Notes under the pieces: model-generated
The model's input: the letters and a program-made list of their open reading frames with translations, nothing else
Databases searched by the model: none
What the model was told of the DNA's origin: nothing
Shown: piece after piece, positions 1 through 44,438 of the stretch
Layout: every line of letters starts with the position of its first letter
How positions within the stretch are numbered: the stretch's first letter is position 1
Source of the DNA: Penicillus capitatus
Lineage: Eukaryota; Plantae; Chlorophyta
DNA length: 64,000 nucleotides
Direction: 5' to 3'
Assembly (NCBI GenBank): GCA_965649825.1
Contig: OZ287705.1
Span: 186,001 to 250,000, forward strand
Program-made: the position numbers and the translations under genes

Positions 1-2651
1 AGAATGGAGTGATGCATTTCACAGCCGTCCGACTGCGAGGACTCAGAGAGAAGACGTACACCCTGCGCATCGACTACCGTTCCACATCCGAGCTGCAGAC
101 GCTGAACGTGAACTCTTCCTTCGTCCGTGTGACGATGCGACCCTGCAAGATCGGCGAGAGGACAGTCAGCCAAGAAGGCGAGAATCTGGAGTGCCAGGAA
201 TGCGGCCAGGGCGAGTTTCAGCCGTTTCCAGACAGGCACGAGTGCCTGCCCTGCAACGAAGTCGAGAACCACACTCAGTGCGATGGGAAAACGATCGTGC
301 CACGCGATGGATACTGGCACGCCACCTCGTTTTCGTTCGCTGCCCAGCAGTGCATTGGCCACGACGCCTGCAGATCGTCGAAGGAGGACGGGAAGACGCG
401 GACGGAGAAGCTCAGAGAGATTGCAAGAGAGGCGCACGAACGGGGCGAGCCTCTGCTTCACAACTTCAGAGAGAACAGCACGCTGTGCAAAAAGGTTATC
501 TAAACAACGTCGTTATCTCAGTGACATCTTTTCGCTGTGTGCAGGGTTATCAGGGTGTTCTCTGCGGCAGCTGCGAGAATGGCTACGGCAGAGAGGGAAG
601 TGTGTGTCGAAAATGCGGATCGCCTGCTGTGCGTGCCTTCATCCTGGCGATGCTGATCCTCTGGTCGTTTCTGTTCTTCACGTATTTCATTCGATCTGTG
701 CTGCTACTGGCCACGCGTATTGAGTTCAATAAGAGATTCAGTCAAGCGAGAGTAACGCAAATTAGACATCGGGCAGCGAATTCCTCTCCGTCCACATCGC
801 AGTCAACGACGAAAGCCGAAACCAGCCAAACTCCGAAGACAGATCTCGAGATGGCGTCAATGTCTTCGCTGGTGGAGGTTGTAGAATTGCCCTATAGCGA
901 AGCGAGGAGACCAGCTGCAAGTCAGTTGCAGGAACAGAATGATCCAGCAGGAAATGTGATGAGGGAGTCCAAGATGACCCACATTGAAAGACTGAGCAGA
1001 CTGAGAGCTTCAACGAGAAGCCAGGGACAGGAAGGTGCTGCACCGACTATCAGGAAACGACGACGCTTTCGAAAGGAAGGAAGGTTGGCACAGAAGCTCC
1101 AGACACTGCTCAATCCGACCAACTCCAACGTCGACATCGAGCCCCTGACTCTGGCCAATCCTGTCTCGGAAGTCCTCAAGGTGCCAGTTCTGTTCGATTA
1201 TTCTGTGTGCGAAGACCGACTTCGTGTATTCTTCAGATTCTTGTCAACTTCCTCCAAGTGACGTCCGTCGCACTCTCGATCAATATCGACTGGGAAGACT
1301 CTCTAAGACGGGCACTCTACGCAATAGGTACGTATCCAGCTAAGAAGAACATCTTTTCTTTTTCAAAATCCAGGTGCCATTGGCAATCTCTCTTCCGGCA
1401 CTGGATACCTCTCACTTGACTGTTTTCTAAACGAGAACGGTCATCCGAAGTCCCTTCGCCGGCTGACAATCACCATCCTCTATCCGCTGCTGATGTTCGT
1501 CGTCTACGTTTTCATGTGGGCAAGCTACAGCCTCATCAGGAGAAGAGGAAAGAGGTACTACATCGCTTGACGACTGACTGGATCCTCACAAGACCTTCTG
1601 CTGTTCTCTAGTTACTGGGGCCAGAGGATTCTGTTGACGTTTCTGGCGATCAACTATTTCATCTACATCGGCATGACCAAGAACCTGCTGCGCTTCTTCG
1701 CCTGTACGCACGTCAACGACGACAGAGAGGGATCGAACTGGCATCGCTTCGTCTGGGAAGAGGACACAGATGTCGAGTGCTACGAGGGTCGCCATGCGTT
1801 GCTCGTCGGCGTCCTCGTCCTTCCTCTCCTCCTCTCCGTCACCCTTGGATTCCCCTTAGGGATTCTCATAACCCTCAGACGCAACAAGAGTCAGCTGAAC
1901 GACGAGGGTTTCGTCCAGACGTTCGGATTCCTATACAGAGCCTACGACAGATACTACTGGGAAGTGGTCATCATGCTGCGAAAGGCAGTGATCGCTGCCA
2001 TCGCAGTGTTCGCCCATCGACTCGGCGCAACGCTCCAGGGCCTCATGTGCGTCCTGGTGATCGTCATCGCCCTGTCGGTGCATCTGGCGGCGCAGCCTTT
2101 TACGCGAGAGATTCCGCAGCTGAATTACCTGGAGACGTGCTCCCTCTCTGCAACCATCGCCGTCTTCGTTGCTGGGCTCATGATGAACGCGGACACAGTT
2201 GACCAGATGGACCGCGTCGCCCTCAGTGTGATAGCGATTCTCTTTGTCTGCTCCACTCTTCTGTTCATCCTGGTGCAGCTGGTGTTCGCCACCGAGGAGT
2301 TCATCGACATGAAACTGATCGAAGTGAAGGCAATGGAGATCCAGGAGGTGATCGATGCGCGTCTGCACGAGAAGGTGCATCGTCTGATTCAGCACTACGG
2401 AGCAACGGCGATCGTGACCATCCGAACACTCGTCCAGCTTTTGATGAGGCGTCCTCGTCAACGCAGAGAAACCGAAGTCGCTCAAGGTGTGTATTCGTAA
2501 ATTCCATTCAACACATGTGTCTTTATGTAATGCTTGATTCGTCGGCGAGAGCCGCCTCCATTCATGTTCGAGTGTTTTGAATGAATGCGTTTCTGTGTTT
2601 CTAGGTTCGTTCTACCGTCGTGTGGGCGAGGCTCAAGCGCACGCACCTTAA
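1..2651 (+). CDS. Pmp-repeat / Cys-rich / multi-pass TM receptor-like protein, copy A (5'-partial; last exons only)
   Basis: ORFs 9..503 (Ig-like plus CQECGQG...CLPC Cys-rich), 191..1261 (CGSCENGYG...CRKC, TM1, Ser/Thr/basic loop) and 1634..2500 (TM helices with YYWEVVIMLRK and QPF...NYLE) are joined by GT-AG introns. Terminal exon 2605-2651 is inferred from an intron at 2487-2604. Confidence 0.9.
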
Positions 2652-4728
2652 ACACCTGGTTATTTTTTGCTAACAGCACACAGTGGGGGATGCGATGTTT
2701 CATCAGATTCTTTTTTGTCATTCGACGTCTATCAAGCTTCGAACTGAGCTCAAGGAGGCTCAGTACCAATGCAGTCATTCAAACCTCTTACGGACATGGA
2801 GGTTCTACACCATGCATGATCCAGTCCGACTATCTTTTTTGAACGTTTTCCAATGAGCGTGCGCATCGTTTATTTGCGATGATCACTGCACGAGTGTATT
2901 TTTTTAAGTGTTTTGGCGCAGAGGATGTTGAGGTACCGATCGTCTTTAAGGTTATGGATTATGGCACTCGTCCGATCGCCGCAGAAATAGTCTTTCTCTC
3001 ACATAATCGCGCAGCAGTAGCTCCTTGGCGCGATGTTTCACTCTCTGGATAAAGCATCCCGTTTTGGATCTCTCTTGACCGACCTCCTCCGTGCGCGCAT
3101 GAGTCAGGTTTTCTTCCTCACTGCTGACGCCTCGTCTCGTTGTGCCAATTCGCAAACCACGCCGTTCAGCGGACTTCCCAATTAGCGGCTGTTCAATCGC
3201 CCTGTTATCAACGTTTGGAGAGGGGCTGGTACGTTGTGTCGACAGTGCACGAGCTTCGTAAAGAACGAACTGTTTGTTGCGTATGGCCTGTCTCCCTGTC
3301 CGTTTGTACTCAGACGCAAACTCTTGTTCGACGATACATTCTGGCATCTGATCCATGGGGTGCTCGGTGCCTTGTCACCACGTGAACGGGTGAAGGTGAT
3401 ATCCTTCGGCTTTTCTTTAACAACGTGAAGCTGTTATCGGCAACGGTGTGGACAGGCAGAAAAGCACTCTGCGCGGAACGTAAAGCAACACAACGCAACA
3501 GACGCTCCGTCTGTTTAGTTTCTTGCGGACCTGATAACGCCGCCTGGCTGTCAATCCGGTAACACTCAGATGCCCTCAATACGCAGACGAACGTTCCCTT
3601 GAGCTCAGGCTCGAACGATCTTCTGCTCGATGAGCGGACTTCCGAACAACGCAGGACAACGTCACTGCCCGGCGCAGTAATTTCTGCAAAACTGAGCTCG
3701 CACAAAACGCAGTTCCTTCTTGATCCCGCCGTCTTCGGCGACTGAACGAGCTCTCGCGCATCGCTCGATTGTCCATTTTCGGGATCTTCCGTCTCACCTC
3801 GGCGTCGTCTTTCACTGCGCTGACCGACATACGTGATCTTCCAACTGATCCACGTCTCTACACTTGACAAAGCACGGTGCCGAACGCGTTTACTGAGCTA
3901 GCTTGTGTTTGGACTTGCAGATTCCTGAGAGAGTATACTCGCGAGACGAAGTTGATGCGCAATAGCCAATCGTGGCACCCCGACGCCGCAGCAAAGGGCA
4001 TTGAGGAGCCATTGACAAAAGGAATGCGCAAAGGTCGAGATGGAACCTATGTATCACTTTACACCGTCACAAGGGATGTCTGTCGCGAGTGGGATCCGTG
4101 GTGGAAATGGCTACAAGATTGTCGCTCGTCTCCTAGCACAGATTGTCGTTTGAAGGGGACAAATCCAATCATCGATAGAAATGACGTGACAGAACCGGTG
4201 GTGATGGAGGACTTCATACGGCGTTCTCCTCATCGCGGAATGGATTACTGTCCATCAAGTGTCGTTCACTCCTGACGGCGACACCCAGGTTCTTTAATCT
4301 ACCTCGTCCGACAGCGGTCCAAGGAATATCATAACTATCAGGACCGAGAGTGTCGCCGAATGATCTGAGCGCGTACAGGTCGGTAGACGAGAGAAGTCGG
4401 ACGGGTATTCTTACACGAACATCGGTACGTCGTTATATAGGTAAACGTCACGTTAAGCGACAGTGACGTTCTGTGATCTAACGAAACGATTTTTGATGAA
4501 CGCATCGATCTTCTGAGTTGTCACCTCGGACGGCGAAAGACGTTCAAGACCCTATCTAGGTTGCTGTCTGTCCACGTTGAAAACGCGTCCCTGATACTGT
4601 CCACTGACCAAGGGCCAGGTTATGGTCAGCTCGTTTGAAGCGTGTTCGTCCTAGCCAACTCCTTCCGTTCTGTCCATTTTGCAGGATCCAACAAATCGCT
4701 CTTGTAATCGAGGCCAAATCTGAGCTCT

Positions 4729-5505
4729 TCAAAAGAGCAACGGGTGACTCTGTGGACAGAGGAATTGATTGCGTCCCGAGATCTCTACACGAGCTGATTC
4801 CATAGGCTGTGCGTTGCCGTCTTCAGGCGCCGAATCCTGCCTAGCAGCGTCCGAATCGTTCGCTCGACAAGACCGTTGGATGAGTGATGAAAGGGAGCGC
4901 TGAGTCTGAGATCTATCCCACGGTGCTCGATCCAAGCGACGAAAGCAGGTGAAGTGAATTGAGAACCGGAGTCTGCCACGATCATCTGAATCTTCCCATG
5001 CTTGCGCATCCAATCGTTGAGGAATTCTTCAACTCGTTCTCGCGTGGGAGAACACACTGTGCATGTCTCCACCTATCCGGAGAAGTAATCAACGGCAACT
5101 AGGATGTATTTTGACGGAGCTCTGGCCTGCTGTGACAATGGACCCAACACGTCGATGCCGACACGTCTGACACTTCGCTAGCTTCGATGGAGCCCAGATC
5201 TTCTCTGAATCTTCGCCTTTTCTACATCTGACAGGTTTCACAAGTCTTGGAACGTGCTCCGCAAATTTTCTTGCCACGGGACCATCTCACGGAGTCTTGG
5301 AGAGAGATAGCTTCAGATTTGCTGCCGAATAGTGCCCCCGTGCATGAGTGTCTCTGATCCACTCTCTAGCGTGCTCGTCAAGCTTCTGCTGACATGTCAC
5401 TGGGTAGGTACAGACTTTAGACGACGACGCAGATTCATTGTTTTCTTCATCGTTGTAGACAGACGACTCTTGTAACGGCACCGTTTCCCATCTGTCATCG
5501 TCCAT
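4729..5505 (-). pseudogene. pol: Integrase remnant (rve core plus HHCC region), fragmented
   Basis: ORF 4785..5072 QMIVADSGSQFTS...HHSSNGLVERTIRTL; ORF 5287..5505 DTHARGHY. Stops and frame changes lie between the pieces. Confidence 0.88.
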
Positions 5506-6239
5506 CTCACTCTCAATCTCACACTTGCTTCGCTGGCGTCACACATTAAGAATTTATGGCGCGAGAGAAGGTCTGCCAATTGGTTTTCCGATCCGGCTTG
5601 AGATCTCACTAAGGGGTAGTCTCTCAGGACCTCTTCCATTCTTCTTAGCATGAGCATGCTCTGGCTCTTCCAATTCCACATCTTGGCAGACGCCCAGCTG
5701 TCTGTGAAGACAACAATCTACCGTCCCAGAGTCAAGTGACGAAACGTTCTCAACGCTTGCAACAGCGCATCCAACTCTATGTCTGAAGAGTGAGCCCATG
5801 GTTTCTTGTTTCTCCTCATCATTGCAACGTTGCCGCTTTCATCCATTAAAGCTGCACCATAACCGACGGCAGAAGCGTTACCACCATCCTCAATGACCCA
5901 CTCCCATTCCAGTAACCAAGCTGCTAAGAGTTTCTCTTGACAGGAGCGCAACGGACACTCCCAGAATCGTCCAAACTCTGTCGTCCGAAATCTTTCGGCT
6001 TCCGCCTTCTTCCATGGTTCTAACGTGCGAAGTATGACGTCTTGACACCAGGTATGACGATTCAATTGAAACAGCAGCCCTTCGACCGTCCTTAAATCCT
6101 TTGCACATCTCGGCTTGGGCAGATCGTTTAGCTTATCAAACCGTTGCTCGGTCTGATTCCTTCTCAAGGTACTCGACAGAATCGGTGCACCACTTGGATT
6201 TCTCGGCATTCAGCCGCCACTCATCACGACTGAGATCAG

Positions 6240-7483
6240 AGAAAACAATGTTCTAATCCCGCAAGTGTTCCTCTATGGCATCTGATCCCAATAACAAATC
6301 ATCAACATAGTAAAAAAACACTAGAGCCGTTCAGTTTTTTCACAATTCGGGACAGAGTTATAGACAGAGCCTTTTGAAAATGTCTCATGCTCGACAGCCA
6401 GCCAAAAGGGCATCTCTTGTATTGAAAGAATCGTGAATTGAAGGAAAAACCAAAAAAGATCCGAATCTCTGGAGCCAGAGGCACCTGCATGAATCCCTTC
6501 CGCATGTCGATAACGGACCAGACCGTCTTCTTCGGCATGTGCCCCAGTAAACGCATCCTGTCTATGGGAATTCCTTGCACCGAAACAGTCGCAGATTTCA
6601 GCGCTCGGAAGTCCATAACCACTCTGATCTTGTTTCCTTTCTGTGGCACGGGTATGAGTGGCGTCAGGATGGCGGGAGGCCTTGCCACTTCTTCGACTGC
6701 CCCGATCTCGACGACCTCTTGTATCTGGGCTTGAATCTGATCCTCCACGGCAGGTGCCAATGGACAACATGGAATCGCGAAGCAGTCGACGTGATCTTCG
6801 AGCCCGAGATCGTCCACACAGTAGTGCTTCACACCTGAAAGCTTCCTCTCGCACAGACGCGGGTATTTCTTCCAGAGGTCGTCCATCGACCGCTCTTCGT
6901 CCTCAGCATCATCGATGTCTGAGACTTCGCTGTCTTCCTTCCGCGTTACTGTGTTCAGCTTCTGGCGACGCTGCCGTTCCAAAGTGTCTCTCAGCAAGAG
7001 ACGCGACCCATCGACTTTCTTCAGAACGACTTGCTCGTCTGTCTTGACTTGGAATGCTGCTATCATGAATTTGCTTCCCAGCTGTTCAGGCCGGTCGCGC
7101 GCATTCCTCGGAGACATTTTGATCGGTTTTTCAGCACTTTTGATGCAGGGCTCGATCATCACACTTCCTGCGTTGCCAGTGGGCATCAACGCGGCGTCTC
7201 TGTTCAAGATTCGATACGGCAGTTGGAATCTCACTGACGATCTGGGGGCGAGAAAGGCGGATTTCCCCAAAGGTAATAAAATTAACGTTCCTTCTCTCCT
7301 AGGCTGAGTTGCTCTACGTTCGTCTTTTTGAATGTAAATTACAGAATCTATCGGTTCTGTACACATTTGGTCAATGAAATGGTCTGTACAGTTGTCTTCA
7401 TCAGGCCCTACTGAAGATCCTCCGCCTCCCAGGCCTGAGCTTGCCGGCGGAGGCGGTCGTTTGACATCACACAGTGAATGCAT
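6240..7483 (-). pseudogene. pol: Reverse transcriptase remnant
   Basis: ORF 6302..7483 ends at a frameshift in an A7/T7 run. The next frame reads YYVDDLLLGSDAIEEHLRD followed by TAG. The same lesions are present in copy 2. Confidence 0.9.
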
Positions 7484-8530
7484 CTTTCCGATCCATCCGG
7501 CAACTTAACACTGATCTGCACCTGCTACTGTCGACCGGTGCTTCCATCTTTGCGAGAGCTGGCAACCCCAGAATCACCTGCTGAGCGCTGTCGAGAACGT
7601 CGAAATCGATCTGGTGCAATGCCGGTGAGAATCCAAGATGCACTTCAAGAGTGACTCTTCCCAGACTCATTTCCACGGAGCCGTTGAATGCTCTCACCTT
7701 TTTCTTCACAGACTCATCAACAGACCACTCTTGACGCGATGCCAGCTTCAGCGGTATCGCATCAAGTCCGGCTCCTGTCTCGATCAGACATTTTCGACGA
7801 ATCACGTCGTTTGCATCAGCAGTCAGGCCGCACCTCAACTGCAATTGCTCACCAGGACTTCCCAAGTCAACCTCGATGACCTGATCGAGATTCTTGCTTG
7901 GCGGACTCTCCATGGGCGGCGCTCCAGTCTGTTGAGGCCTCGTTCCTCCCGAGATCTTCTTTTGCTTATTCAGCCACAGCCAGCAGCCTGCACGACGATG
8001 ACCTGGTTTCCCGCAGTAGTAGCAAAGAATGGGGGATCCCGGTCTGCCACCGCGTCTTCCCCTTCCTCTGAAAGTTCGGAATCCCGAACGGCTTCGTCTG
8101 GAGGGCTCGGATGGCTGGCCAGAATCGCTTTCCTGCCCTTGGCTCATCTGATGCACACCGTCAGCCACAGCTCCCGAGTGCTCGTCTTCTAGATCACCCT
8201 TGTCGTTGAGGTGTTAATCTTCCGCTTCTGCAGCTCTCAATGAGACGCTCTTGTGGTTCTCAGCTCCCCTCTGCAGAGTCATCTTCCACTTCAGAGATCT
8301 CTTCGCTTCTGCCGCGATCGTTTCGATCAACAGTTCATCCACGTCGTACTTGTCTTCTAGTCGATTCCTCGGTCTTAGAGCGAGCTTGGCCAGCAAGATC
8401 TCTCTTGCCCTCGGCAGCAAAACAGACTTCGAAACCGTCTTCATTCTCTGGCGGTATCGTATTACGAACGAGTGGGTGTCCGCATCTCGCTCGCAGATGC
8501 ACTTGAGCAGATACTTTTCGGCGTCTAGAT

Positions 8531-10164
8531 ATATAATTGGTGGTGCTTACAGCCCTTTTTCAAGTTAAACATCAAAGGCGCATCTGTTGTCCGTACTAAG
8601 GCTGACAATCATCAGGACTCAGAGCAGGAATGACTTTGCAGAGAATGGGATAATAAAGTGTGGATCAGGAGACACCTCGGGGGGTGCTGGGAGGCCGTGT
8701 GAACGGGCGGATGGGTAAAACCATGTAATCGAGGGTAGCGAACGCCGTCTTGGGGTCCTTCAGATGCTCGAAAAGAGTCTTCGACACGAAGACTTTCAGA
8801 TTTCTGCTGGGCGTCCATTCTGGGAGGGGCTGACCAGCCGGATCGCGTTTGCGTCGGTTCATGCGGTGTGGAGCTGCGAAGTGCTCTTCTGCGAGTTCGG
8901 GTGCAGGGATCTGCCAGCGAGAAGCATTCTGATCGGCGATGGCTGCGATTGCGTCTTCCGGGTCTATGTCCAGATCAACATTGTTGATGACCACGGGGAC
9001 TTTGTCCTTGGTTGGCGAGAGGTACGGATTGTTGACTGTGAACGTGCCGATGTCCGGCAGTTCAAGATCCCAGGAGTCTCCTGCGCATTCTAGGCAGCGG
9101 TCCAAAGATTTCTCGAAGGGCTCCCTAAGATCCGCGCGGACTTGAATGTAGTATCTGCCTCCGTGATCTGTTCGGATGTCTTCGACGAAGCTCTTGAAAT
9201 TCTTGATCTTGAGCTTCTGCTCCAAGCTGATTCCAAGCTGGCGGAACGACGGGCGGTCTCCCTTCAGCTTCACTGGGCACAGCTGGAAGCTTCTCTCGTC
9301 GCATCTGATCTGGGCTTTGAGCTCCTGGGTTTTCCTTCTGAGCTCTCTGGCCTGGGCGTTCCGTTGCTGCTGTGCTGGAGACTTCGTGGGCAGGGCCTTT
9401 CGGGCGGCCTCTCGGTACGATTTGGGAGCAGCGCTTCCGGATTCTGTTGCAGCTTGATTTCTGTCTGCCGGAGCGGGGGGCGTGGTGTGGGCGGCGGGCG
9501 GTGACCAATCCGTGATGCTGTGAGAAAATAGCATGCAGGTGTGTACCTCGTGTAACTTGGCAATAAACTGGGAGGTAGGTGCGCGTTGCGGGTGTTTTTC
9601 CGGAACGAAGGCCTTGACGACTGTCTCTATGTAATCCGTTGCCGAGCGGATGTCATCAGAGAGAGCTCTGAGGAATGCGCTCGGCGGCACCGAGTGTCTG
9701 GAGCGACAGAGTCGATGCGTGAGTTTGCGAATATTCGTCAGGCAGATCTGGGGCTTCCGACGCCAAGAGGAGCTGGTTGCGCAGGTTCTCGAGTCTGTTC
9801 ACTAGAACCAACTGGGCTTCGTCTTTCCTTTCGTGCGCCGCCAGGTAGTCGCTGATCTTCGAGATGAGCGTGGCGGGTTCCACGCTCGCAGCGATGTGTG
9901 TAGGGCAGGCCTGGAGGGCAGTGTTGACGAGGATGAGCTCCTTCTTGCTCATCGCTTCGAGCACCTTCGGGGACAGGCGCAGGTCGCGCCTGTACCTGAC
10001 CGTGTTCGCGGCCTGCGCCACCGCCGTGCGCACCGGGTCGGGGGCGGTGTCAGGACCTCCGGTCTGCGAGCCTGAGGGCTGCATCGTTCGCTTTAGTGCG
10101 TGCGGGCACCGTCGTTCGGCAAGGGTTTGAGCGCGGCAGAACGAAAGTGTCGTACGGAGGTGGA
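8531..10164 (-). mobile_element. Non-autonomous non-LTR (LINE-derived) element carrying ORF1/gag only, 16-bp TSD
   Basis: TTTTCGGCGTCTAGAT occurs at 8515-8530 and 10165-10180. The paralogous site (~23882-23897) has one copy and no insert. It contains ORF1-like coding sequence, a ~135-bp 3' segment and a short ATTATAT tail; no RT or endonuclease. Confidence 0.9.
8665..10084 (-). pseudogene. LINE ORF1 (gag-like) protein split by one frameshift near 9690-9700
   Basis: ATG at 10084; 142-aa and 341-aa ORFs overlap. The C-terminal part VVINNVDLDIDPEDAIAAIADQN...HRMNRR...PSRNLKVFV...LDYMVLPIRPF resembles the pre-zinc-knuckle region of non-LTR ORF1 (my pattern recognition). It stops where the CCHC knuckle would begin. 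Confidence 0.7.
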
Positions 10165-11626: not shown

Positions 11627-14600
11627 ATGAAACGGCGTTGTCGAATCTTCCTCCTGTTCTTCAGCTTCGCGCTAGTGCGACATGCAGTCGGTCAAGGTAC
11701 GACGAACGCGGGGACCCCCTTCTCTTGACTGCGTTTTGCCTGTTTCAGACGCTTGCGACACGTTCGTCGTGGACAATGCACTGGTCGTCGACGCGTCGAC
11801 CGTGCAGGATATAGATGCGTCGGGCACTTCGTTTCAAGAAGTGGTGAACTGCCTTCGTAACGGAGCTTCCATTCAATTCGCAACGGCGAACTTTTTCGCG
11901 AACGAAACGATTCGCATTAAGACGAACGTCTCCATCGCGTCCGTCTCTGAAGGAAGGACGACGTTTACCTGTAATGCGAGACCAGTCTTCGAAATCAGGT
12001 CAGCCCATCGTCGTCGTTAGAAGAACGGTGGCGAAGTGCACGCACGTACGTACATAGGAATAAGGCGACGGTCGTCTTCTCCAACATCGCTGTCGAGCAG
12101 TGCGAGTTGGACAGCGTCGACGCTCCGCTCGTGGTTGGTCCGGATGCGACGACCACCCTCAGATCCGTGTTGTTTCTGAACAATTCGAACGGCAGAGGGG
12201 CCAGCAGCATCATGGCGATGGCTGAATCCAGCGTCACCATTGAAGACTCCGAGTTCCGAGACAACGGCGGCGAACTGGGGACGGTCGTAATGTCGAACGC
12301 AAGCAACCTTACGGTCAGGAACTCGACGTTCTCCGACAATAGAGTCAACAACTCAGAGCACGGAGGCGGCGTCTTTCTCATCCAGGTGTGTCTGCCATTT
12401 GCAGTTCTCCAAGGAGAACAAATCCGTCGACGATGCAGAGCGAGGAGACGCCGACGACCGTGGCCATAGCAGGGGAGAGCAGATTCATCAGGAACGAGGC
12501 GACCAACGGGGATGGGGGAGTCATCCATCTCTCCGGATCTGGCGCTTCGCTCACGCTCGAGGGAGATGCGGTCTTCAAATCGAACGTCGCCGGCAGACGC
12601 GGCGGCGCCATCTTTGTCTCGGAAGCCAACCTCGTTACGATCAGGGATGCCGCTTTCGTCGACAACGAAGCAGAGGGCACCGGAGGCGGAGCGCTGTTCG
12701 CCGAGGCAAGTCCTGATGCATGCAATTAACGCAGACCTACATCTGTTCACAGGATCTGAAAAAAGACGTCGTGAACAACATCCAAATCTCGAACAGCGTT
12801 TTCGCCAGAAACCGTGCCAGCGGGTACGGCGCATCCGGAGGCGGAATCTGTCTCCAGGGACGAGGCATACGCTGCACACTGACCGATTCGTCGTTCACGA
12901 TGAACTCGGCACGGCTCGACGGCGGCGCAATGCACGTCTCCGATCAGGCATCGACGACCATCCGCCAGGCGACGTTCATCGGAAACGAGGCCATGAATGG
13001 AGGCGGCGCGGCGCTCTTCGTACTGGTAAGCCTCTGATCATGTATCCTTCCTCCTCATCGACGTCCTGTCGATGGCACCGCAGTCTCTGGAGCGCACCAG
13101 AGCTTCCATCTTGAACGTTACAGTGACGGACTCCAAGTTCCTCTTCAACCGAGCCCTGTACAACAACCGCGGTGGAGGGTGCTTTGCCGTCGTCGGCTTT
13201 GGATCGAACGTCACCGTTAGCCGTTGCAGCTTCAAGGACAACGATGGAGGACGCGGCGCAGGCGGCGCCCTGTACGCCTTCCGTGGACCTGTCATCGGTA
13301 TCGAGAGCTCGAGTTTCGAAAGGAACAAGGCAGAATGGGGCGGTGCGATTTACGCAGAGGTACTCTACCCTTCGCCGACAGATCATCTTGAATATGGCTG
13401 CTGTAGCACGATGCGTCGCTTGTCGTCAGATCCAGCACGTTTCTAGACAATTCTGCGAACGAAGGGGGTGCCATGGACGTGTGGGGCGATGTCGCCATTG
13501 AAGTGGACGACTGCACGTTCGAGAAGAATCGAGCAGTAACGGAGGGAGGTGCCGCCAAGGTGCAGAACTTTGCATCCGCCCAATTCGGTCTGGCGTATTT
13601 CCAGATGAACAACAGTCGCGTTCATGAGAACGAAGCCGGAACTAATCTCTTCGAGGACAGACTCTATGGTACAGAGACGCAGGGAGGCGGCATCCTCGCC
13701 GAAGGCAGCGGGATCGATCTCGAACTGCAGAACAGCACGTTTAGAAGGAATCTGGCTTCCAATGGAGGCGCCTTGAGCATCTACGCCGTCGCCGCCTGCA
13801 ACATCGACAGAAACAGCAAGCAAGGATCCAGTGACAGAGTGAGATCTCCTAGAAGTAACGGGAGCATTGCTGCAGGTTTCAGTACAACGAGGCCACCTTC
13901 GGCGGAGCTCTTTTCATTACCGTTGACGAAAACGTCCACCTCACCAGACTCGATGAGTATCGAGTAACGAATGCCACTTTCCGGAAGAACCATGTGGAGG
14001 TGGAAGGAGGGGCCATCTACGTGACGACCACAAGAGCAGAATCCAACTCAGTATCGTTGAATGCGCACGCCTATCTGGTGCTCATAGAGAAGAGCTCCTT
14101 CAGAGAGAACACGTAAGCACATTACGATACCGCACTCGATTTGTCTGCATCGATGGCAGGGCGAGACACGGAGGCGGCGCTCTGTCCGCCATCGGATCCG
14201 CTGTGAAGGTGCATAAAAACGTGTTCAGATGGAACAGCGCTCGAGCGAACTCGACTGATCAGGCGACGCCATTCTTCGGATACGGAGGAGCTGTGCACGT
14301 TCAGACAGGAACCACTGTCGAATGCAAAGACTCGTTGTTTTCTTTAAACAGGGCAGATGTTGGCGGTGCTGTTTATGTCAAAGACGGCTCGTTCGAGGGA
14401 GAATTGCTAGAGTTCAGCAAGAATGCAGTTTTCGAAGGAGGCGTCGGCGGCGCTGTGTCAGTCGAGATTTCGAAAGGGCAGAATATTCCATACATCACAG
14501 GGGCCAACCACCGAAGAATTCTCTTTCAGTGTGACGGATGCGAATTCAAACGCAACAACGGTTCTTTGGCAGGAGGTTACTGATTTATCTCTTTGTCGCT

Positions 14601-17600: not shown

Positions 17601-17951
17601 TCATCGACATGAAACTGATCGAAGTGAAGGCAATGGAGATCCAGGAGGTGATCGATGCGCGTCTGCACGAGAAGGTGCATCGTCTGATTCAACACTACGG
17701 AGCAACGGCGATCGTGACCATCCGAACACTCGTCCAGTTTTTGATGAGGCGTCCTCGTCAACGCAGAGAAACCGAAGTCGCTCAAGGTGTGTATTCGTAA
17801 ATTCCATTCAACACATGTGTCTTTATGTAATGCTTGATTCGTCGGCGAGAGCCGCCTCCATTCATGTTCGAGTGTTTTGAATGAATGCGTTTCTGTGTTT
17901 CTAGGTTCGTTCTACCGTCGTGTGGGCGAGGCTCAAGCGCACGCACCTTAA
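11627..17951 (+). CDS. Pmp-repeat beta-helix / Cys-rich / multi-pass TM receptor-like protein, copy B (15 exons, ~1,800 aa)
   Basis: ATG 11627 MKRRCRIFLLFFSFALVRHAVGQ (signal peptide). More than 20 FxxN...GGA(I/L) repeats (e.g. FKSNVAGRRGGAIF, FERNKAEWGGAIY, FVENTAKAGGAIF). 14 introns placed by eye keep the frame; the intron 7 donor is ambiguous. About 9-10 hydrophobic helices at the C-terminus. Confidence 0.9.
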
Positions 17952-28300: not shown

Positions 28301-31300
28301 ACTGATTTGTCTCTTTGTCGTTCGTGTTATCAGTGAATGATCGTGTCTTTAGGTGCTGTGCATGTGCACGACATGGATCCGGCCTCGACCTTCGAAAAGG
28401 ACAACGATCTGATGATCGACGGATGCAAGCGCGGACGGGAAGGAGAATTTCACAGCGAAGACCACGAGCTGACTTGTCTGAACTATTGGTTATTTGTCGG
28501 AATGGTGAACAATCGTACAGCTCGCTTCAGAAATACGAGTTTTGTCGAAAACACTGCGAAAGCTGGAGGCGCCATTTTCACAAACAACCTCTCGATGATC
28601 ACGATCGTGCCAGATACCGTAAAATTTCTGGATGAAAGTATCACCTATAAGCTCGACTACGTGCTGACGAAGAACAAGACGGAGCATCTCAAGGCGTGCA
28701 ACGTGAACTTTCACGAGAATAGCGTTCCTGATGGTGGGTATGGCAAGCAAGTGGCATCGACCCCCTTCGCGGCATTCCTCATCAACCGCGATGAGGAAGG
28801 TCGACGAGTTCCCAGGAAGACGTTCTCGAACGGCTCCTTCCTCAGTGGAGATCGGCTGCGATTCGATGTGGTGTTCAGAGACGGTCTGGGCGAACCCGTC
28901 ACCTTCGCAGACAACCTGACGGCTCACATCAGCTGCGACGAAGAGAGGTCGAAGAACACGTCGGCAGACTGCTCGAAGCTCGAGATATCTGGACAGGAAA
29001 CTGCCCAGGCGAGCGAGGATGGAGTGATGCGTTTCACAGCCGTCCGACTGTTGGGTCAGAGGAAGAAGACGTATACCCTGCGCATCGACTACCGTTCCAC
29101 ATCCGAGCTGCAGACGCTGAACGTGAACTCTTCCTTCGTCCGTGTGACGATGCGACCCTGCAAGATTGGCGAGAGGACAGTCAGCAAAGAAGGCGAGAAT
29201 CTGGAGTGCCAAGAATGCGGCCAGGGCGAGTTTCAGCCGTTTCCAGACAGGAACGATTGTCCGCCCTGCAACGAAGCCGAGAACCACACCCAGTGCGATG
29301 GGAAAACGATCGTGCCGCGCGATGGATACTGGCACGCCACCTCGTTTTCGTTCGCCGCCCAGCAGTGCATTGGCCACGACGCCTGCAGGTCGTCGGAGGA
29401 CGGGGAGACGAGGACGGAGAAGCTCAGGGAGATTGCAAGAGAGGCGCACGAACGGGACGAGCCTCTGCTTCACAACTTCAGAGAGAACAGCACGCTGTGC
29501 AGAAAGGTTATCTAAACAACGTCGTTATCTCAGTCACATCTTTTTGCTGCGTTCAGGGTTATCAGGGTGTTCTCTGCGGCAGCTGCGAGAATGGCTACGG
29601 CAGAGAGGGAAGCGTCTGCCGAAAATGCGGATCGCCTGCCATGCGTGCATTCATATTGACGATGCTGATCCTCTGGTCGTTTCTGTTCTTCACGTATTTC
29701 ATTCGATCTGTGCTGCTACTGGCCACGCGCATCGAGTTCAACAAGAGATTCAGTCAAGCGAGAGTAACGCAAATTAGACATCGGGCAGCGAATTCCTCTC
29801 CGTCCACATCGCAGTCAACGACGAAAGCCGAAACCAGCCAAACTCCGAAGACAGATCTCGAGATGGCGTCAATGTCTTCGGTGGTGGAGGTTGTAGAATT
29901 GCCCTATAGCGAAGCGAGGAGACCAGCTGCAAGCCAGTTGCAGGAACAGAATGATCCAGCAGGAAACGTGACAAAGGAGTCCAAGATGACCCACATTGAA
30001 AGACTGAGCAGACTGAGAGCTTCAACGAGAAGCCAGGGACAGGAAGGTGCTGCGCAAAATACAAGGAGGCGACGACGCTTTCGAAAGGGAGGAAGATTGG
30101 CACAGAAGCTCCAGACACTGCTCAATCCGACCAACTCCAACGTCGCCATCGAGCCCCTGACTCTGGCCAATCCTGTCTCGGAAGTCCTCAAGGTGTGCCC
30201 GTTCTGTCTGACGGTTCGTGTGCGAAGACCGACTTCGTGTGTTCTTCAGATTCTTGTCAACTTCCTCCAAGTGACATCCGTCGCACTCTCGATCAATGTT
30301 GACTGGGAAGACTCTCTGAGAAGGACACTCTACGCAATGGGTATGTTCTTAAACATGAAAGTCGGACATCTTTCTTGGGCTTGAATGCAGGTGCCATCGG
30401 CAATCTCTCTTCCGGCACTGGATACCTCTCACTGGACTGCTATCTCGATGAGAACGGTCATCCGAAGTCCCTTCGCCGGATGACAATCACCATCCTCTAT
30501 CCGCTGCTGATGTTCGTCGTCTACGTTTTCATGTGGGCAAGCTACAGCCTCATCAGGAGAAGAGGAAAGAGGTCCTACATCGCTTGACGACCGACTGGAT
30601 CCTCACAAGACCTTCCGCTGTTCTCTAGTTACTGCGGCCAGAGGATTCTGTTGACGTTTCTGGCGATCAACTACTTCATCTACATCGGCATGACCAAGAA
30701 CCTGCTGCGCTTCTTCGCCTGTACGCACGTCAACGACGACAGGGAGGGATCGAACTGGCATCGCTTCGTCTGGGAAGAAGACACAGATGTCGAGTGCTAC
30801 GAGGGTCGCCACGCGTTGCTCGTCGGCGTCCTCGTCCTTCCTCTCCTCCTTTCCGTTACCTTTGGATTCCCCGCTGGGATTCTCATAACACTCAGACGCA
30901 ACAAGAGTCAGCTGAACGACGAGGGTTTTGTCGAGACGTTCGGATTCCTATACAGAGCCTACGACAGATACTACTGGGAAGTGGTCATCATGCTGCGCAA
31001 GGCAGTGATTGCTGCCATCGCAGTGTTCGCCCATCGACTCGGCGCAACGCTCCAGGGCCTCATGTGCGTCCTGGTGATCGTCATCGCCCTGTCGGTGCAA
31101 CTGGCGGCGCAGCCTTTTACGCGAGAGATTCCGCAGCTGAATTACCTGGAGACGTGCTCGCTCGGCACAACCATCGCCGTCTTCGTTGCTGGGCTCATGA
31201 TGAACGCCGACACAGTTGACCAGATGGACCGCGTCGCCCTCAGTGTGATAGCGATTTTCTTCGTCTGCTTCACTCTTCTGTTCATCCTGGTTCAGCTGGT

Positions 31301-31668
31301 GTTCGCCACCGAGGAGTTCATCGACATGAAACTGATCGAAGTGAAGGCAATGGAGATCCAGGAGGTGATCGATGCGCGTCTGCACGAGAAGGTGCATCGT
31401 CTGATTCAACACTACGGAGCAACGGCGATCGTGACCATCCGAACTCTCGTCCAGCTTTTGATGAGGCGTCCTCGTCAACGCAGAGAAACCGAAGTCGCTC
31501 AAGGTGTGTATTCGTAAATTCCATTCAACACATGTGTCTTTATGTAATGCTTGATTCGTCGGCGAGAGCCGCCTCCATTCATGTTCGAGTGTTTTGAATG
31601 AATGCGTTTCTGTGTTTCTAGGTTCGTTCTACCGTCGTGTGGGCGAGGCTCAAGCGCACGCACCTTAA
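25345..31668 (+). CDS. Pmp-repeat / Cys-rich / multi-pass TM receptor-like protein, copy C
   Basis: Same exon-intron layout as copy B: ATG 25345, TM exon ORF 30651..31517, inferred terminal exon ending at TAA 31668. Confidence 0.9.
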
Positions 31669-34780: not shown

Positions 34781-34810
34781 TTTCATTTCCATTTTTCGGG
34801 GGAGGGTTTT

Positions 34811-35016: not shown

Positions 35017-35411
35017 GTTTTTCATTTTTCGGAGTTTCGCGCAAGCGGAGATGTATGGGCCCATGTCAGAATAACTGTAGCAAGTTACATCGTGACTGCC
35101 TCGGTTTCTAAGGGTTCTGTCTCTGAAGGGGCGCTCATTCGGGGTTAACGTCACCTCAGAGTCCTTTTCCTGTGGCTCTGAGAGGCTGGTGACTCACCTG
35201 TCCTGTCACTATTAGCGTATAAATCCGTAGACGTGGCCTTGTAGATACCCTTGCTCTGTAAGAACGTGAAGCCTTCCGCAAACACAGTCATCGCATTAAT
35301 ATTGTCTGCAGGAGCCCACAAGATTACTGTCCGTCAAGTGTCGTTCACTCATGAAGGCGAAGCCTAGTTTCTTTAATGTGCCTGCGATGGCGGTCCACGG
35401 AAGATCATAAC

Positions 35412-35955: not shown

Positions 35956-35960
35956 ATAAC

Positions 35961-38135: not shown

Positions 38136-41100
38136 ATGAAACGGCGTTGTCGAATCTTCCTCCTGTTCTTCAGCTTCGCACTAGTGCGACATGCAGTCGG
38201 TCAAAGTACGACGAGCGCGGAAGACCCCCTTCTCTTGACTGCATTTTGCCTGTTTCAGACGTCTGCGATGCGTTCATCGAGGACAATGCATTGGTCGTTG
38301 ACGCGTCGACCGTGCAGGACATTGTCGCCTCGGGCACTTCGTTTCAAGAAGTGGTGAACTGCCTTCGTAACGGCGCTTCGATTCAATTCGCAACGGCGAA
38401 CTTTTTCGCGAACGAAACGATTCGCATTAAGACGAACGTCTCCATCGCGTCCGTCTCTGAAGGAAGGACGACGTTTACCTGTAATGCGAGACCCGTCTTC
38501 GAAATCAGGTTAGCCCATCGTCGTCGTTAGAAGAACGGTGGCGAAGTGCACGCACGTACGTACATAGGAATAAAGCGACGGTCGTCTTCTCCAACATCGC
38601 TGTCGAGCAGTGCGAGTTGGACAGCGTCGACGCTCCGCTCGTGGTTGGTCCGGATGCGATGACCACCCTCAGATCCGTGATGTTTCGGAACAATTCGAAC
38701 GGCAGAGGGGCCAGCAGCATCATGGCGATGGCTGGATCCAGCGTCACCATTGAAGACTCCGAGTTCCGAGACAACGGCGGCGAACTGGGGACGGTGGTCC
38801 TGTCGAACGCAAGCAACCTTACGGTCAGGAACTCGACGTTCTCCGACAACAGAGTCAACAACTCAGAGCACGGAGGCGGCGTCTTTCTCATCCAGGTGTA
38901 CTCTGCCATTTGCAGTTTTCCGAAGAGAACAAATCCGTGGATGATGCAGAGCGAGGAGACGCCGACGACCGTGGCCATAGCAGGGGAGAGCAGATTCATC
39001 AGGAACGAGGCGACCAACGGGGATGGGGGAGTCATCCATCTCTCCGGAGCTGGCGCTTCACTCACGCTCGAGGGAGATGCGGTCTTCAAATCGAACGTCG
39101 CCGGAAGACGCGGCGGCGCCATCTTTGTCTCGGAAGCCAACCTCGTTACGATCAGGGATGCCGCTTTCGTCGACAACGAAGCAGAGGGCAGCGGAGGCGG
39201 AGCGCTGTTCGCCGAGGCAAGTCCTGATGCATGCAATTAACGCAGACCTACATCTGTGCACAGGATCTTAGGAAAGACGTCGTGAACGACATCCAAATCT
39301 CGAACAGCGTTTTCGCCAGAAACCGTGCCAGCGGGTACGGCGCATCCGGAGGCGGAATCTGTCTCCAGGGACGAGGCATACGCTGCGCACTGACCGATTC
39401 GTCGTTCACGATGAACTCGGCACGGCTCGACGGCGGCGCAATGCACGTCTCGGATCAGGCATCGACGACCATCCGCCAGGCGACGTTCGTCGGAAACGAG
39501 GCCATGAATGGAGGCGGCGCGGCGCTCTTCGTACTGGTAAGCCTCTGATCATGTATCGTTCCTCCTCATCGATGTCCTGTCGATGGCATCGCAGTCCCTG
39601 GAGCGCACCAAAGCTTCCATCTTGGACGTCACAGTGACGGACTCCAAGTTCCTCTTCAACCGAGCTCTGTACAACAACCGCGGTGGAGGGTGCTTCGCCG
39701 TCGTCGGCTTTGGATCGAACGTCACCGTTAGCCGTTGCAGCTTCAAGGACAACGATGGAGGACTTGGCGCAGGCGGCGCTCTGTACGCCTTCCGTGGACC
39801 TGTCATCGACATAAAGAAGTCGAATTTCGAAAGAAACAAGGCAGAATGGGGCGGTGCGATTTACGCAGAGGTACTGCACCCTTCGCCAGCAGATCATCTT
39901 GAATCTATGGCTGCTGTAGCACGACGCGTCGCTTGTCGTCAGATCCAGCACGTTTCTGAAAAACTCGGCGAACGAAGGGGGTGCCATGGACGTGTGGGGC
40001 GATGTCGCAATTGAAGTGGACGACTGCACGTTCGAGAAGAATCGAGCAGTAACGGAGGGAGGTGCCGCCAAGGTGCAGAACTTTGCATCCGCCCAATTCG
40101 GTCTGGCCTACTTCCAAATGAACAACAGTCGTGTTCTGGGAAACGAAGCCGGAACCAATCTCTTCGAGGACAGACTCTATGGAACAGAGACGCAGGGAGG
40201 AGGCATCCTCGCCGAAGGCAGCGGGATCGATCTCGAACTGCAGAACAGCACGTTTAGAAGGAATCTGGCTTCCAATGGAGGCGCCTTAAGCATCTACGCC
40301 GTCGCCGCCTGCAACATCGACAGAAACAGCAAGCAAGGATCCAGTGACAGAGTGAGATTTCCGAGAAGTAACGGGGGGCGTTGCTGCAGGTTCCAGAACA
40401 ACGAGGCCACCTTCGGCGGAGCTCTTTTCATTACCGTTGACGAAAACGTCCACTCCACCAGACTTGACGAGTATCGAGTGGCGAGTTCCACGTTTGAAAA
40501 GAACCATGTGGAGGTGGAAGGAGGGGCCATCTACGTGACGACCACAAGAACGGAATCCAACTCAGTATCATTGAATGCGCACACCTATCTGGTTCTCATA
40601 GAAAAGAGCTGGTTTCGGGAGAACACGTGAGCACATCATAATGTCTTCTGCATTTTGACGCATCTCTCTGGATGTCAGGGCGAGACACGGAGGCGGCGCT
40701 CTGTCTGCCATCGGATCCGCCGTGCAGATACATGAAAACGTGTTCAGATGGAACAGCGCTCGAGCGAACTCGACTGATGAAGCGACGCCATTCTTTGGAT
40801 ACGGAGGGGCAGTGCACGTTCAGACAGGGACAACCATCGAATGCAAAGACTCGTTGTTTTCTTCTAACGAGGCAGATGTTGGCGGTGCTGTTTATGTCAA
40901 AGACGGCTCATTCTTCGGAGAATTGCTAAACTTCAGCAAGAATGCAGTTTTTGAAGGAGGCGTCGGCGGCGCTGTGGCAGTCGAGGTTTCGAAAGGACAG
41001 AATATTCCATACATTGCATATCGCAGCTTCCGAAAAATTATATTCCAGTGTGACGGATGCGAATTCAGAAGCAACAACGGTTCTCTGGCAGGAGGTTACT

Positions 41101-44100
41101 GATTGATCTCTTTGTCTTTCGTGTTTTCACTAAATGATCGTGTCTTTAGGTGCTGTGCATGTGCACGACATGGATCCGGCTTCGACATTCGCAAAGAAAA
41201 ACGATCTGATGATCGACGGATGCAAGCGCGGACGGGAAGGAGAATTTCACAGCGAAGACCACGAGCTGACTTGTTTGACATATTGGGTGTTCGTTGGAAT
41301 GGCGAACAATCGTACAGCTCGCTTCAGAAATACGAGTTTTGTCGAAAACACTGCGAAAGCTGGAGGCGCCATTTTCACAAACAACCTCTCGATGATCACG
41401 ATCGTGCCAGATGCCGTAAAATATCTGGATGAAAGTATCACCTATAAGCTCGACTACGTGCTGACGAAGAACAAGACAAAGCATCTCGAGGCGTGCAACG
41501 TGAGCTTTCACGACAATAGCGTTCCTGATGGTGGGTATGGCAAGCAAGTGGCATCGACCCCCTTCGCGGCATTCCTCATCAACCGTGACGAGGAAGGTCG
41601 ACAGGATCCCAGGAAGATGTTCTCGAACAGCTCCTTCCTCAGTGGAGATCGGCTGCGATTCGATGTGGTGTTCAGAGACGGACTGAACGAACCCGTCACC
41701 TTCGCAGACAACCTGACGGCTCACATCAGCTGCGACGAAGAGAGATCGAAGAACAGGTCGGCGGACTGCTCGAAGCTCGAGATTTCTGGACAGGAAACTG
41801 CGCAGGCGAGCGAGAATGGAGTGATGCATTTCACAGCCGTCCGACTGCGAGGACTCAGGAAGAAGACGTACACTCTGCGCATCGAGTACCGCTCGACATC
41901 CGAGCTGCAGACGCTGAACGTGAACTCTTCCTTCGTCCGTGTGACGATGCGACCCTGCAAGATCGGCGAGAGGACAGTCAGCCAGGAGGACGATTACCTG
42001 GAGTGCCAGGAATGCGCCCAGGGCGAGTTTCAGCCGTTTCCAGACAGGCACGAGTGCCTGCCCTGCAACGAAGCCGAGAACCACACCCAGTGCGATGGGA
42101 AGACGATCGTGCCGCGCGATGGATACTGGCACGCCACCTCGTTTTCGTTCGCCGCCCAGCAGTGCATTGGCCACGACGCCTGTAGATCGTCGAAGGAGGA
42201 CGGGGAGACGAGGACTGGGAAGCTCGGAGAGATTGCAGGAGTGGCACACGAACGGGGCGAGCCTCTGCTGCACAACTTCAGAGAGAACAGCACGCTGTGC
42301 AGAAAGGTTATCTAAACACTGCCCCTCCCTCCCTTCAGTGACGTCTTTTCGCTGTGTGCAGGGTTATCAGGGTGTCTTATGCGGCAGCTGCGAGAATGGC
42401 TACGGCAGAGAGGGAAGTGTCTGCCGAAAATGCGGATCGCCTGCTATGCGTGCTTTCATACTGACGATGCTGATCCTCTGGTCGTTTCTGTTCTTCACGT
42501 ACTTCATTCGATCCGTGCTGCTGATGGCCACGCGTATTGAGTTCAACAAGAGATTCAGTCAAGCGAGGATGACGCAAATCAGACATCGGGCAGCGAATTC
42601 CCTTCCATCCACATCACATCTGGATACGCAAGGCGCAACTAGCTATACTCGGAAGGTAGATCTCGAGATGGCGGCGATGTCTTCGGTTCCGGAGGTTGAA
42701 GAACTCTCCTTCAGCGATGCGTGGAGACCAGCTGCAAGCCAGTTGCAGGAACAGAATGATCCAGCAGGAAACGTGACGAGGAAGTTTAAGATGACCCACA
42801 TTGAAAGACTGAACAGACTGAGAGCTGCAACGAGAAGCCAGGGACAGGAAGGTGCTGCGCAAACTACAAGGAAACGACGACGCTTTCGAAAGGGAGGAAG
42901 ATTGGCACAGAAGCTCCAGACACTGCTCAATCCGACCAACTCCAACGTCGCCATCGAGCCCCTGACTCTGGCCAATCCTGTCTCGGAAGTCCTCAAGGTG
43001 CCAGTTCTGTTCGATTATTCCGTGTGCGAAGACCGACTTCGTGTATTCTTCAGATTCTTGTCAACTTCCTCCAAGTGACGTCCGTCGCACTCTTGATCAA
43101 TATCGACTGGGAAGACTCTCTAAGAAGGGCACTCTACGCAATGGGTATGTTCTTAAACATGAAAGCTGGATTGTTCTGTGCTTGAGTACAGGTGCTATCG
43201 GAAATTTCTCTTCCGGCACTGGATACCTTTCATTGGACTGCTACCTCAACGAGAACGGTCATCCGAAGTCCCTCCGCCGGATGACGATCGTCATCCTCTA
43301 TCCGCTGCTGATGTTCGTCGTCTACGTTTTCATGTGGGCAAGCTACAGTCTCATCAGGAGAAGAGGAAAGAGGTACTACACATGACTGACTGGATCCTCA
43401 CAAGACCTTTCGCTGTTCTTTAGTTACTGCGGCCAGAGGATTCTGTTGACGTTTCTGGCGATCAACTACTTCATCTACATCGGCATGACCAAGAACCTGC
43501 TGCGCTTCTTCGCCTGTACGCACGTCAGCGACGACAGGGAGGGATCGAACTGGCATCGCTTCGTCTGGGAAGAGGACACAGATGTCGAGTGCTACGAGGG
43601 TCGCCATGCGTTGCTCGTCGGCGTCCTCGTCCTTCCTCTCCTCCTCTCTGTCACCCTTGGATTCCCCTTAGGGATTCTCATAACCCTCAGACGCAACAAG
43701 AGTCAGCTGAACGACGAGGGTTTCGTCCAGACGTTCGGATTCCTATACAGAGCCTACGACAGATACTACTGGGAAGTGGTCATCATGCTGCGCAAGGCAG
43801 TGATCGCAGCCATCGCAGTGTTCGCCCATCGACTCGGCGCAACGCTCCAGGGCCTCATGTGCGTCCTGGTGATCGTCATCGCCCTGTCGGTGCATCTGGC
43901 GGCGCAGCCTTTTACGCGAGAGATTCCGCAGCTGAACTACCTGGAGACGTGCTCGCTCGCCACAACCATCGCCGTCTTCGTTGCTGGGCTCATGATGAAC
44001 GCCGACACAGTTGACCAGATGGACCGCGTCGCCCTCAGTGTGATAGCGATTCTCTTCGTCTGCTTCACTCTTCTGTTCATCCTGGTTCAGCTAGTGTTCG

Positions 44101-44438
44101 CCACCGAAGAGTTCATCGACATGAAACTGATCGAAGTGAAGGCAATGGAGATCCAGGAGGTGATCGATGCGCATCTGCACGAGAAGGTGCATCGTCTGAT
44201 TCAGCACTACGGAGCAACGGCGATCGTGGCCATCCGAACACTCGTCCAGCTTGTGATAAGGCGTCATCGTCGACGCAGAGAAACCGAAGTCGCTCAAGGT
44301 GTGTATTCGCAAAATACATTCAAAACCATTGGCGAGAGCCGCCTCCATTCATGTTCGAGTGTTTTGTATGAATGCATCTCTGTGTTTCTAGATTCGTTCT
44401 ACCGTCGTGTGGGCGAGACTCAAGCGGACGCAGCTTAA
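38136..44438 (+). CDS. Pmp-repeat / Cys-rich / multi-pass TM receptor-like protein, copy D
   Basis: ATG 38136; same exon layout; more divergent promoter and cytoplasmic loop. Ends ...SFYRRVGETQADAA at 44438. Confidence 0.9.

Follow-up and report, generated by a model that had tools for sequence, protein, structure and literature searches.

What does a green alga do with a row of genes that join a repeat known from chlamydial adhesins to a multi-pass membrane domain? The question is raised by contig OZ287705.1 of Penicillus capitatus (assembly GCA_965649825.1), of which positions 186,001 to 250,000 of the forward strand were analysed; this stretch of 64,000 nucleotides (nt) is called the window, and coordinates below are positions within it. 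The predicted products carry an extracellular beta-helix of polymorphic outer membrane protein (Pmp) type, raised on a Cys-rich stalk above nine transmembrane (TM) helices. We lean towards reading them as glycosylated plasma-membrane proteins that sense surface contact or the cell wall, with the beta-helix coupled to a transducer like those of the fungal Pkd2/Flc proteins, a function inferred from architecture and conservation.

The genes lie in four intervals, every one on the + strand; a tblastn search with the spliced protein as query found none elsewhere in the window.

1..2500, + strand: copy a, C-terminal 762 codons only, of a gene that begins upstream of the window; stop codon TAA; exons 1-494, 545-1180, 1237-1327, 1374-1554 and 1612-2500, projected from the exon model of copy c
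11627..17800, + strand: copy b, complete, 14 exons, 1828 amino acids (aa)
25345..31517, + strand: copy c, complete, 14 exons, 1826 aa; the reference model, spliced manually
38136..44438, + strand: copy d, complete, 1869 aa

The sequence-only reading had seen four apparently intact copies filling positions 1-44438. Four direct-repeat copies are indeed present; three (b, c and d) are complete, and the first is cut by the window start. The span is that of the gene array, about half of it being spacer with retrotransposon remnants rather than gene. Copy a has no internal stop over its 762 residues, and its protein matches those of copies b and c at 94-95% identity. Copy d has lost the ancestral stop: TAA reads CAA at 44310-44312, and the cytosolic tail gains 42 residues. 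The DNA is eukaryotic in character, with a GC content of ∼0.53, and long uninterrupted open reading frames (ORFs) are absent from the region. Self-comparison of the window by BLASTN yields direct repeats only, at 89-97% identity.

1-7755 against 15294-23051: 97% identity
10165-19542 against 23882-33261: 95.5% identity
11128-18311 and 24846-32027 against 37636-44807: 91-92% identity
1-3011 against 41813-44807: 89% identity

This is a young tandem array with a repeat unit of ∼13-15 kb, made of one gene and a spacer with a retrotransposon remnant. A 3′ flank of ∼1.7 kb, holding minus-strand ORFs of 134-249 aa, is conserved after copies a, b and c (2500-4250, 17800-19540 and 31520-33260) and not after d, where homology to the other copies stops soon past the gene, at ∼44807.

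The copy c model links stop-to-stop frames via short GT-AG introns, from the ATG at 25345 to the stop at 31517.

25345-25414, 25468-25717, 25777-26104, 26158-26424, 26472-26744, 26803-27078, 27126-27538, + strand: exons 1-7 of copy c
27595-27831, 27882-28297, 28353-29506, 29557-30192, 30250-30340, 30391-30571, 30629-31517, + strand: exons 8-14 of copy c

Each complete gene has 13 introns of 44-59 nt (47-59 nt in copy c, where one is in frame). Two of the 13 are GC-AG introns (26425-26471 and 27539-27594 in copy c, donors GCAAGT and GCAAGG), and these are kept in copies b, c and d. For intron 7, an alternative donor and acceptor at 27557/27602 was dropped, since the GC-AG pair 27538/27595 preserves the repeat spacing and is found in every copy; the choice is a model prediction from sequence. 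Projected on copies b and d, the model gives open frames with all 39 splice-site pairs (GT/GC-AG) retained, and the coding sequence of ∼5.5 kb shows no frameshift or premature stop in any of the three complete copies. Intron lengths differ among copies by non-multiples of three, while the exons stay in frame.

Proteins are 91-95% identical among copies, and introns (90-93% identical, with indels) diverge faster than exons. The ratio of non-synonymous to synonymous substitution rates (dN/dS, Nei-Gojobori) is 0.27-0.31 overall (0.27 for copy b against c) and 0.18-0.28 in the TM core, with the disordered loop and the tail as the only regions of higher values; it stays below 1 in every ectodomain window. 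dN is 0.03-0.2 in the ectodomain against 0.015-0.02 in the TM core. The genes are thus intact, spliced by model and under purifying selection, which bears out the earlier expectation of intact copies. Which two of b, c and d are most alike depends on the position in the gene (b/c over most of it, c/d at 27641-28837, b/d at 28838-29629), a signature of gene conversion. Such mosaic divergence points to conversion homogenising or diversifying functional genes. One block of copy b, at residues ∼801-1000 (window ∼14100-15100), stands out with a dS of 0.4-0.58 against copies c and d, a dN/dS of ∼0.3 and a DNA identity of 79-88%; it was probably converted from a paralogue outside the window.

Copy c serves to describe the protein, whose parts follow one another along the + strand.

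25345..25413, + strand: predicted signal peptide (residues 1-23), with a basic n-region, a hydrophobic core and an AVG-Q cleavage-type end
25817..28642, + strand: Pmp-type right-handed beta-helix (residues ∼121-940, introns included), ∼20 coils with FxxN and GGA[ILV] motifs
28643..29152, + strand: beta-rich middle module (residues ∼941-1110), all-beta in the AlphaFold model of homologue P0021 (residues 364-470, predicted local distance difference test (pLDDT) ∼80)
29153..29637, + strand: Cys-rich stalk (residues 1111-1255), with Cys columns conserved at 90% or more in alignment A2 of the family (46 rows)
29641..30180, + strand: TM1 (residues 1257-1283 by hydropathy), then a basic, low-complexity cytosolic loop of ∼150 residues
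30181..31307, + strand: PF06011-like core, TM2-TM9, with YWE..RK at 30972-31001 and PF..N.LE at 31113-31151
31308..31514, + strand: cytosolic C-terminal helical tail, a long helix in both models

The ectodomain was largely foreseen in the sequence-only reading. Its signal peptide, MKRRCRIFLLFFSFALVRHAVGQ, is identical in copies b, c and d and of eukaryotic type, as judged from sequence features. The FxxN/GGA repeats that had been taken for Pmp adhesin motifs form 20 F..N...GG[AG] units with a period of ∼27 aa over residues 146-920 (22 GG[AGCV]x and 32 FxxN in total), and both Beta_helix (1e-20) and Chlam_PMP (PF02415; 3.8e-15, 54.8 bits against a cut-off of 20.6) exceed the Pfam gathering score. 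The AlphaFold model of the Caulerpa homologue gives this part a pLDDT >90, and its Foldseek neighbours are all parallel beta-helices. The ectodomain carries 24 N-glycosylation sequons. What had been called an Ig-like segment is supported as a beta-rich module in the homologue model and has no Pfam match in the whole-protein scan. The Cys-rich stalk holds, with 13 Cys at residues 1113-1252. In the whole-protein scan (E ≤ 1), DUF7630 was the only family listed besides Beta_helix and Chlam_PMP. The last ∼30 residues of the stalk resemble it (PF24633, precomputed on relatives P0253 and P0268) at a sub-threshold E of 0.003; apart from this, only NCD3G (E 0.008), likewise below threshold, was seen for the stalk, and neither the Ephrin_rec_like domain proposed for checking nor GCC2_GCC3 was listed at E ≤ 1.

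For the membrane domain, hydropathy, the models and a positive-inside count agree on nine predicted TM helices with the N-terminus outside and the C-terminus inside, so that the multi-pass character announced as ∼9-10 helices stands and the count settles at nine, not ten. The inside loops hold 46 Lys and Arg against 8 outside, and Cys are confined to the outside loops. The loop past TM1, with 25 Lys and Arg, is disordered in the homologue model. The two motifs picked out beforehand, here YWE..IMLRK and PF....LN..E..SL, are the top conserved columns of a 67-sequence family alignment, in which W and E are invariant and R, K, P and N at least 90% conserved. The top positions are charged or polar residues inside TM6 and TM8 or at their ends (E1648, R1654, K1655 and E1705); conserved charges in such places would fit a transducer or pore more readily than a passive anchor. 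The PF06011 profile matches 22 of the 67 family members (best 7.3e-13) and is precomputed on relatives P0001, P0016, P0017, P0052, P0230, P0268 and P0273. Judged by these profile matches, membership of the TM domain in the PF06011 'fungal TRP-like' (Flc/Pkd2) superfamily holds at the family level only.

The labels transient receptor potential (TRP)-like and G-protein-coupled receptor (GPCR)-related, both given to the region in the earlier reading, fare differently. The first survives as the family-level link to fungal Flc/Pkd2-type proteins and fails as a canonical six-TM TRP channel: no Ion_trans or TRP-channel match was found in Pfam, no TRP channel appears among the Foldseek matches of either model to the Protein Data Bank (PDB), and the helices number nine. 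The second is abandoned, in view of the nine helices, a TM4-9 model with no PDB neighbour and an insignificant match to the C5a receptor, the best hit (E 0.035 over 57 residues) in a search of PDB sequences with the family profile that returned nothing significant. The AlphaFold models have a pLDDT of 78 overall and ∼90 in the beta-helix, stalk and TM bundle for the Caulerpa homologue, and a pLDDT of 94.5 with a predicted template modelling score of 0.81 for the last exon of the window gene (TM4-9). Foldseek with the whole homologue model returned only generic parallel beta-helix neighbours and none for the TM domain; a structural match to TMEM16A (E 0.17) was treated as noise. The TM domain belongs neither with the canonical TRP channels nor with the GPCRs, and no structure related to its fold has been solved.

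Relatives were collected by an exhaustive phmmer search with the last exon, in which 3802 cluster representatives passed E<1e-3, of which 832 also passed E<1e-10; word-indexed searches with the TM exon or its alignment yielded just 20-26 unnamed fragments. All 30 named long matches that were looked up come from the Bryopsidales (Caulerpa lentillifera, Bryopsis sp. KO-2023 and Ostreobium quekettii), so that the label 'protist' used earlier was imprecise. An apicomplexan or other alveolate origin, weighed because of the kinase array further along the window and a layout like that of alveolate cysteine-repeat modular proteins (CRMPs), was dropped on this ground; by the best hits, the DNA most likely stems from a bryopsidalean alga. 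The expanded family of surface proteins that had been postulated is supported, and its architecture of Pmp beta-helix plus multi-pass domain recurs in Caulerpa, Bryopsis and Ostreobium. These proteins carry Chlam_PMP, often Beta_helix and in some cases a weak TRP match, and bear automatic names such as 'Adhesin-like', 'Polymorphic outer membrane protein', 'Right handed beta helix...' and 'TRP C-terminal domain-containing protein', the last being the UniProt name of Ostreobium members. The relatives compared were P0176 (EukProt g3550.t1, 1780 aa), P0021/P0022 of Caulerpa lentillifera, GMH44751.1 of Bryopsis sp. KO-2023 and, in Ostreobium quekettii, CAD7699503.1 ('Adhesin-like protein'), CAD7699384.1 and CAD7697722.1 ('TRP C-terminal domain-containing protein'). 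They share Pmp repeats, middle module, Cys-rich stalk, nine-TM domain and tail in collinear order, at 25-38% identity overall and at most 45% in the TM domain. Full-length collinear homologues reach 38% over 1800 columns (P0176, the best), 32% (Caulerpa P0022) and 27% (Ostreobium P0044), and the best matches to named bryopsidalean relatives are only 35-45% identical; they are too distant for orthologues, and all are uncharacterised.

A closer gene, with 67-80% aa identity, lies on an unannotated 1.8-Mb metagenome contig of the European Nucleotide Archive (L001 4833-10864; ERZ26696514 contig ctg303815). Its residues 24-708 and 706-1471 are each encoded in a single uninterrupted frame, and it therefore has ∼3 introns against 13 in the window genes, which would mean marked intron gain or loss between the two. 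No paper was found in the literature search on the family, on PF06011 joined with PF02415 or on Pmp repeats in Bryopsidales, and the genome papers on Ostreobium and Bryopsis are silent about it. Already known are the individual domains and the proteins in public proteomes under automatic names; the family itself is undescribed in the literature found.

Three known systems help to place these proteins. The fungal PF06011 set (S. pombe Pkd2, Trp1322 and Trp663, S. cerevisiae Flc1-3, A. nidulans TrpR and C. neoformans Flc1) shares the order predicted here of signal peptide, extracellular N-terminal domain, multi-helix membrane domain and cytosolic C-terminal tail, and a third of the family members tested show homology to it by profile. 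Pkd2, TrpR and Flc1 are linked to Ca2+ entry and to wall or membrane integrity (PMC9727806, PMC8618638, PMC9600462): Pkd2 of S. pombe, with the N-terminus outside and the C-terminus inside, is Ca2+-permeable under membrane stretch (PMC9727806), and TrpR of A. nidulans influences Ca2+ balance and wall integrity (PMC8618638). The ectodomains differ, the fungal one being a small ML-like lipid-binding TRP_N domain, of which the whole-protein Pfam scan found no match in the window protein, whereas the algal one is a ∼1250-residue assembly of Pmp beta-helix, beta module and Cys-rich stalk; the ∼150-residue cytosolic loop past TM1 is a further difference. With chlamydial Pmp autotransporters, the window proteins share FxxN and GGA(I/L/V) coils of a right-handed beta-helix, with PF02415 above threshold (PMC10715098, PMC11166332). 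Unlike Pmps, they show no autotransporter beta-barrel or Pmp middle domain in the Pfam scan (E ≤ 1) and end in nine alpha-helical TM segments, and unlike bacterial type V secretion genes they have 13 GT/GC-AG spliceosomal introns conserved in three copies and a eukaryotic-type signal peptide. Alveolate CRMPs combine adhesive or Cys-rich modules with nine C-terminal TM helices, N-terminus out and C-terminus in, and a role as contact sensors setting off exocytosis has been proposed for them (PMC9670195). Signal peptide, Cys-rich ectodomain modules, nine TM helices and orientation are all shared with the window proteins; the likeness, drawn from the CRMP description, is architectural only, and the CRMP ectodomain modules (MAR, Kringle and EGFR-like) are different.

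Good support exists for what the genes are, for their architecture and for their intactness; the role that follows is a proposal. A sensor of this kind would work as follows. The beta-helix ectodomain would bind an extracellular partner, be it a polysaccharide of the own wall or of a foreign one, or another surface; the rigid stalk would hand ligand binding or mechanical load on to the conserved membrane domain; and the latter might, in the way of its fungal relatives, serve wall and membrane integrity as a Ca2+-permeable transducer activated by stretch or contact. Any adhesion or recognition by the window proteins is likewise putative. Several points weigh against the sensor proposal. The window copies themselves score 19.3-21.6 bits with the PF06011 profile, below the threshold of 28.5. 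The TM4-9 model found no neighbour in the PDB (best E 1.7), so that no solved relative exists in which to locate a pore. Few fungal PF06011 proteins have an established channel activity, and carriage of flavin or haem is ascribed to some. In addition, AlphaFold may over-predict beta-solenoids from repeat sequences (10.1101/2024.10.30.621056). A far bolder version, in which these would be an undescribed class of adhesion- or force-gated channels (Pmp beta-helix fused via a rigid Cys-rich stalk to a Flc/Pkd2-type channel), massively expanded in siphonous green algae and underlying the rapid Ca2+-dependent wound plugging, protoplast re-aggregation and wall-integrity sensing by which one giant cell survives injury, is speculative and decidedly unlikely.

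Could the proteins simply be adhesins or a surface coat? The beta-helix would then attach to substrate, to epiphytic or endophytic bacteria, to gametes or to protoplast fragments, and the nine-helix domain would be an anchor or sorting module with no part in signalling or transport. Pmp-type repeats are adhesin signatures in Chlamydia (PMC10715098), 'Adhesin-like protein' is among the automatic UniProt names, and the ectodomain is more variable than the TM core and reshuffled by gene conversion, as in variable surface families. We consider this unlikely, though worth keeping in sight: one helix would do as an anchor, no other part is as well conserved across thousands of family sequences as the TM core, with W and E invariant and R and K, in helices or at their ends, nearly so, and dN/dS remains below 1 throughout the ectodomain windows. 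A membrane-tethered wall enzyme, the beta-helix being a lyase, epimerase or hydrolase acting on a xylan, mannan or sulfated glycan wall, is improbable. Alginate C5-epimerases (AlgE6 and AlgG, probability ∼0.9), polysaccharide lyases and phage tailspikes are the nearest structural neighbours of the beta-helix, but with E ≥ 1.2e-3 and a TM-score ≤ 0.14 on the query, all are weak resemblances due to a generic fold; moreover, the sequence fits Chlam_PMP, a non-enzymatic repeat, the DPHD motif of the epimerases is missing and the Pfam results contain no catalytic family.

The membrane domain might instead move a small molecule, as proposed for yeast Flc with FAD or haem, while the ectodomain captures or positions it. 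Pkd2 homologues of some fungi are placed in the FLC family of flavin carriers, yet with calcium channel activity (PMC8618638), and the TM fold lacks a channel-like PDB neighbour. A rigid 1250-residue beta-helix and stalk would nonetheless be unusual for a carrier, and no substrate is indicated by the sequence, which leaves us giving this idea little credence. Decaying duplicates or an assembly artefact are largely excluded and have next to no probability. Such an origin is suggested by the setting of the copies between retrotransposon remnants in a repeat-rich region, by their 89-97% DNA identity and by the stop codon lost in copy d; it is contradicted by the open coding sequences, the retained splice pairs and the dN/dS of ∼0.3, by introns that diverge faster than exons with indels that are not multiples of three, and by a 5-9% divergence whose mosaic structure is unlike a collapsed or duplicated assembly. 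The adhesin, wall-enzyme and carrier readings are all possible and less consistent with the conservation pattern than a contact or wall sensor.

The spacers and the rest of the window hold other elements.

4785..10084, - strand: LTR (long terminal repeat)-retrotransposon-like element, fragmented, with gag, protease, reverse transcriptase, RNase H and integrase ORFs (Pfam RVT_1, rve, gag-asp_proteas, zf-CCHC)
∼20080-23897, - strand: second copy of this retroelement, without ∼1.6 kb (8530-10165 of the first)

The retroelement was duplicated along with the gene unit, so its insertion predates the latest duplications. A search of 2400-11700 revealed no LTR pair of 60 nt or longer. Two minus-strand ORFs of 393 aa (6302-7483 and 21597-22778), equal in length to the plus-strand exon ORFs of copies b and d (393 aa; 392 aa in c), were considered as inverted gene copies and rejected, being the retroelement reverse transcriptase by Pfam. 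The spacer between copies c and d (33410-35284) contains a different gag-like CCHC ORF (34121-34780) between direct repeats of 221 nt (33410-33630 and 35064-35284, 97% identical); it may be a small or internally deleted LTR element confined to this spacer. Beyond the receptor array, at 45900-64000 and on both strands, lies an array of divergent ORFs with protein-kinase domains (Pfam Pkinase 4e-6 to 4e-11). They adjoin a common domain of ∼165 residues with no Pfam match, found in seven ORFs at 21-42% identity (46k+, 48k-, 52k+, 54k-, 61k+ and 62k-, and more weakly at 58k+/55k-). The kinase array is a second lineage-specific tandem family beside that of the receptors.

In genome annotation, the receptor family is easily mis-called as contamination by a bacterial 'polymorphic outer membrane protein'. 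Its architecture also means that the PF06011 membrane domain tolerates radically different ectodomains. Siphonous green algae (Caulerpa, Bryopsis, Halimeda and Ostreobium) are single giant cells that must sense wall damage and reseal within seconds, and we know of no receptors that do so. With hundreds of members, actively duplicated, the family offers concrete candidates for this role. RNA interference works in Bryopsis (PMC12961179), and the candidates are therefore testable. In them, an adhesin-type ectodomain is joined to the only membrane domain so far linked with stretch-activated Ca2+ entry in walled fungi.

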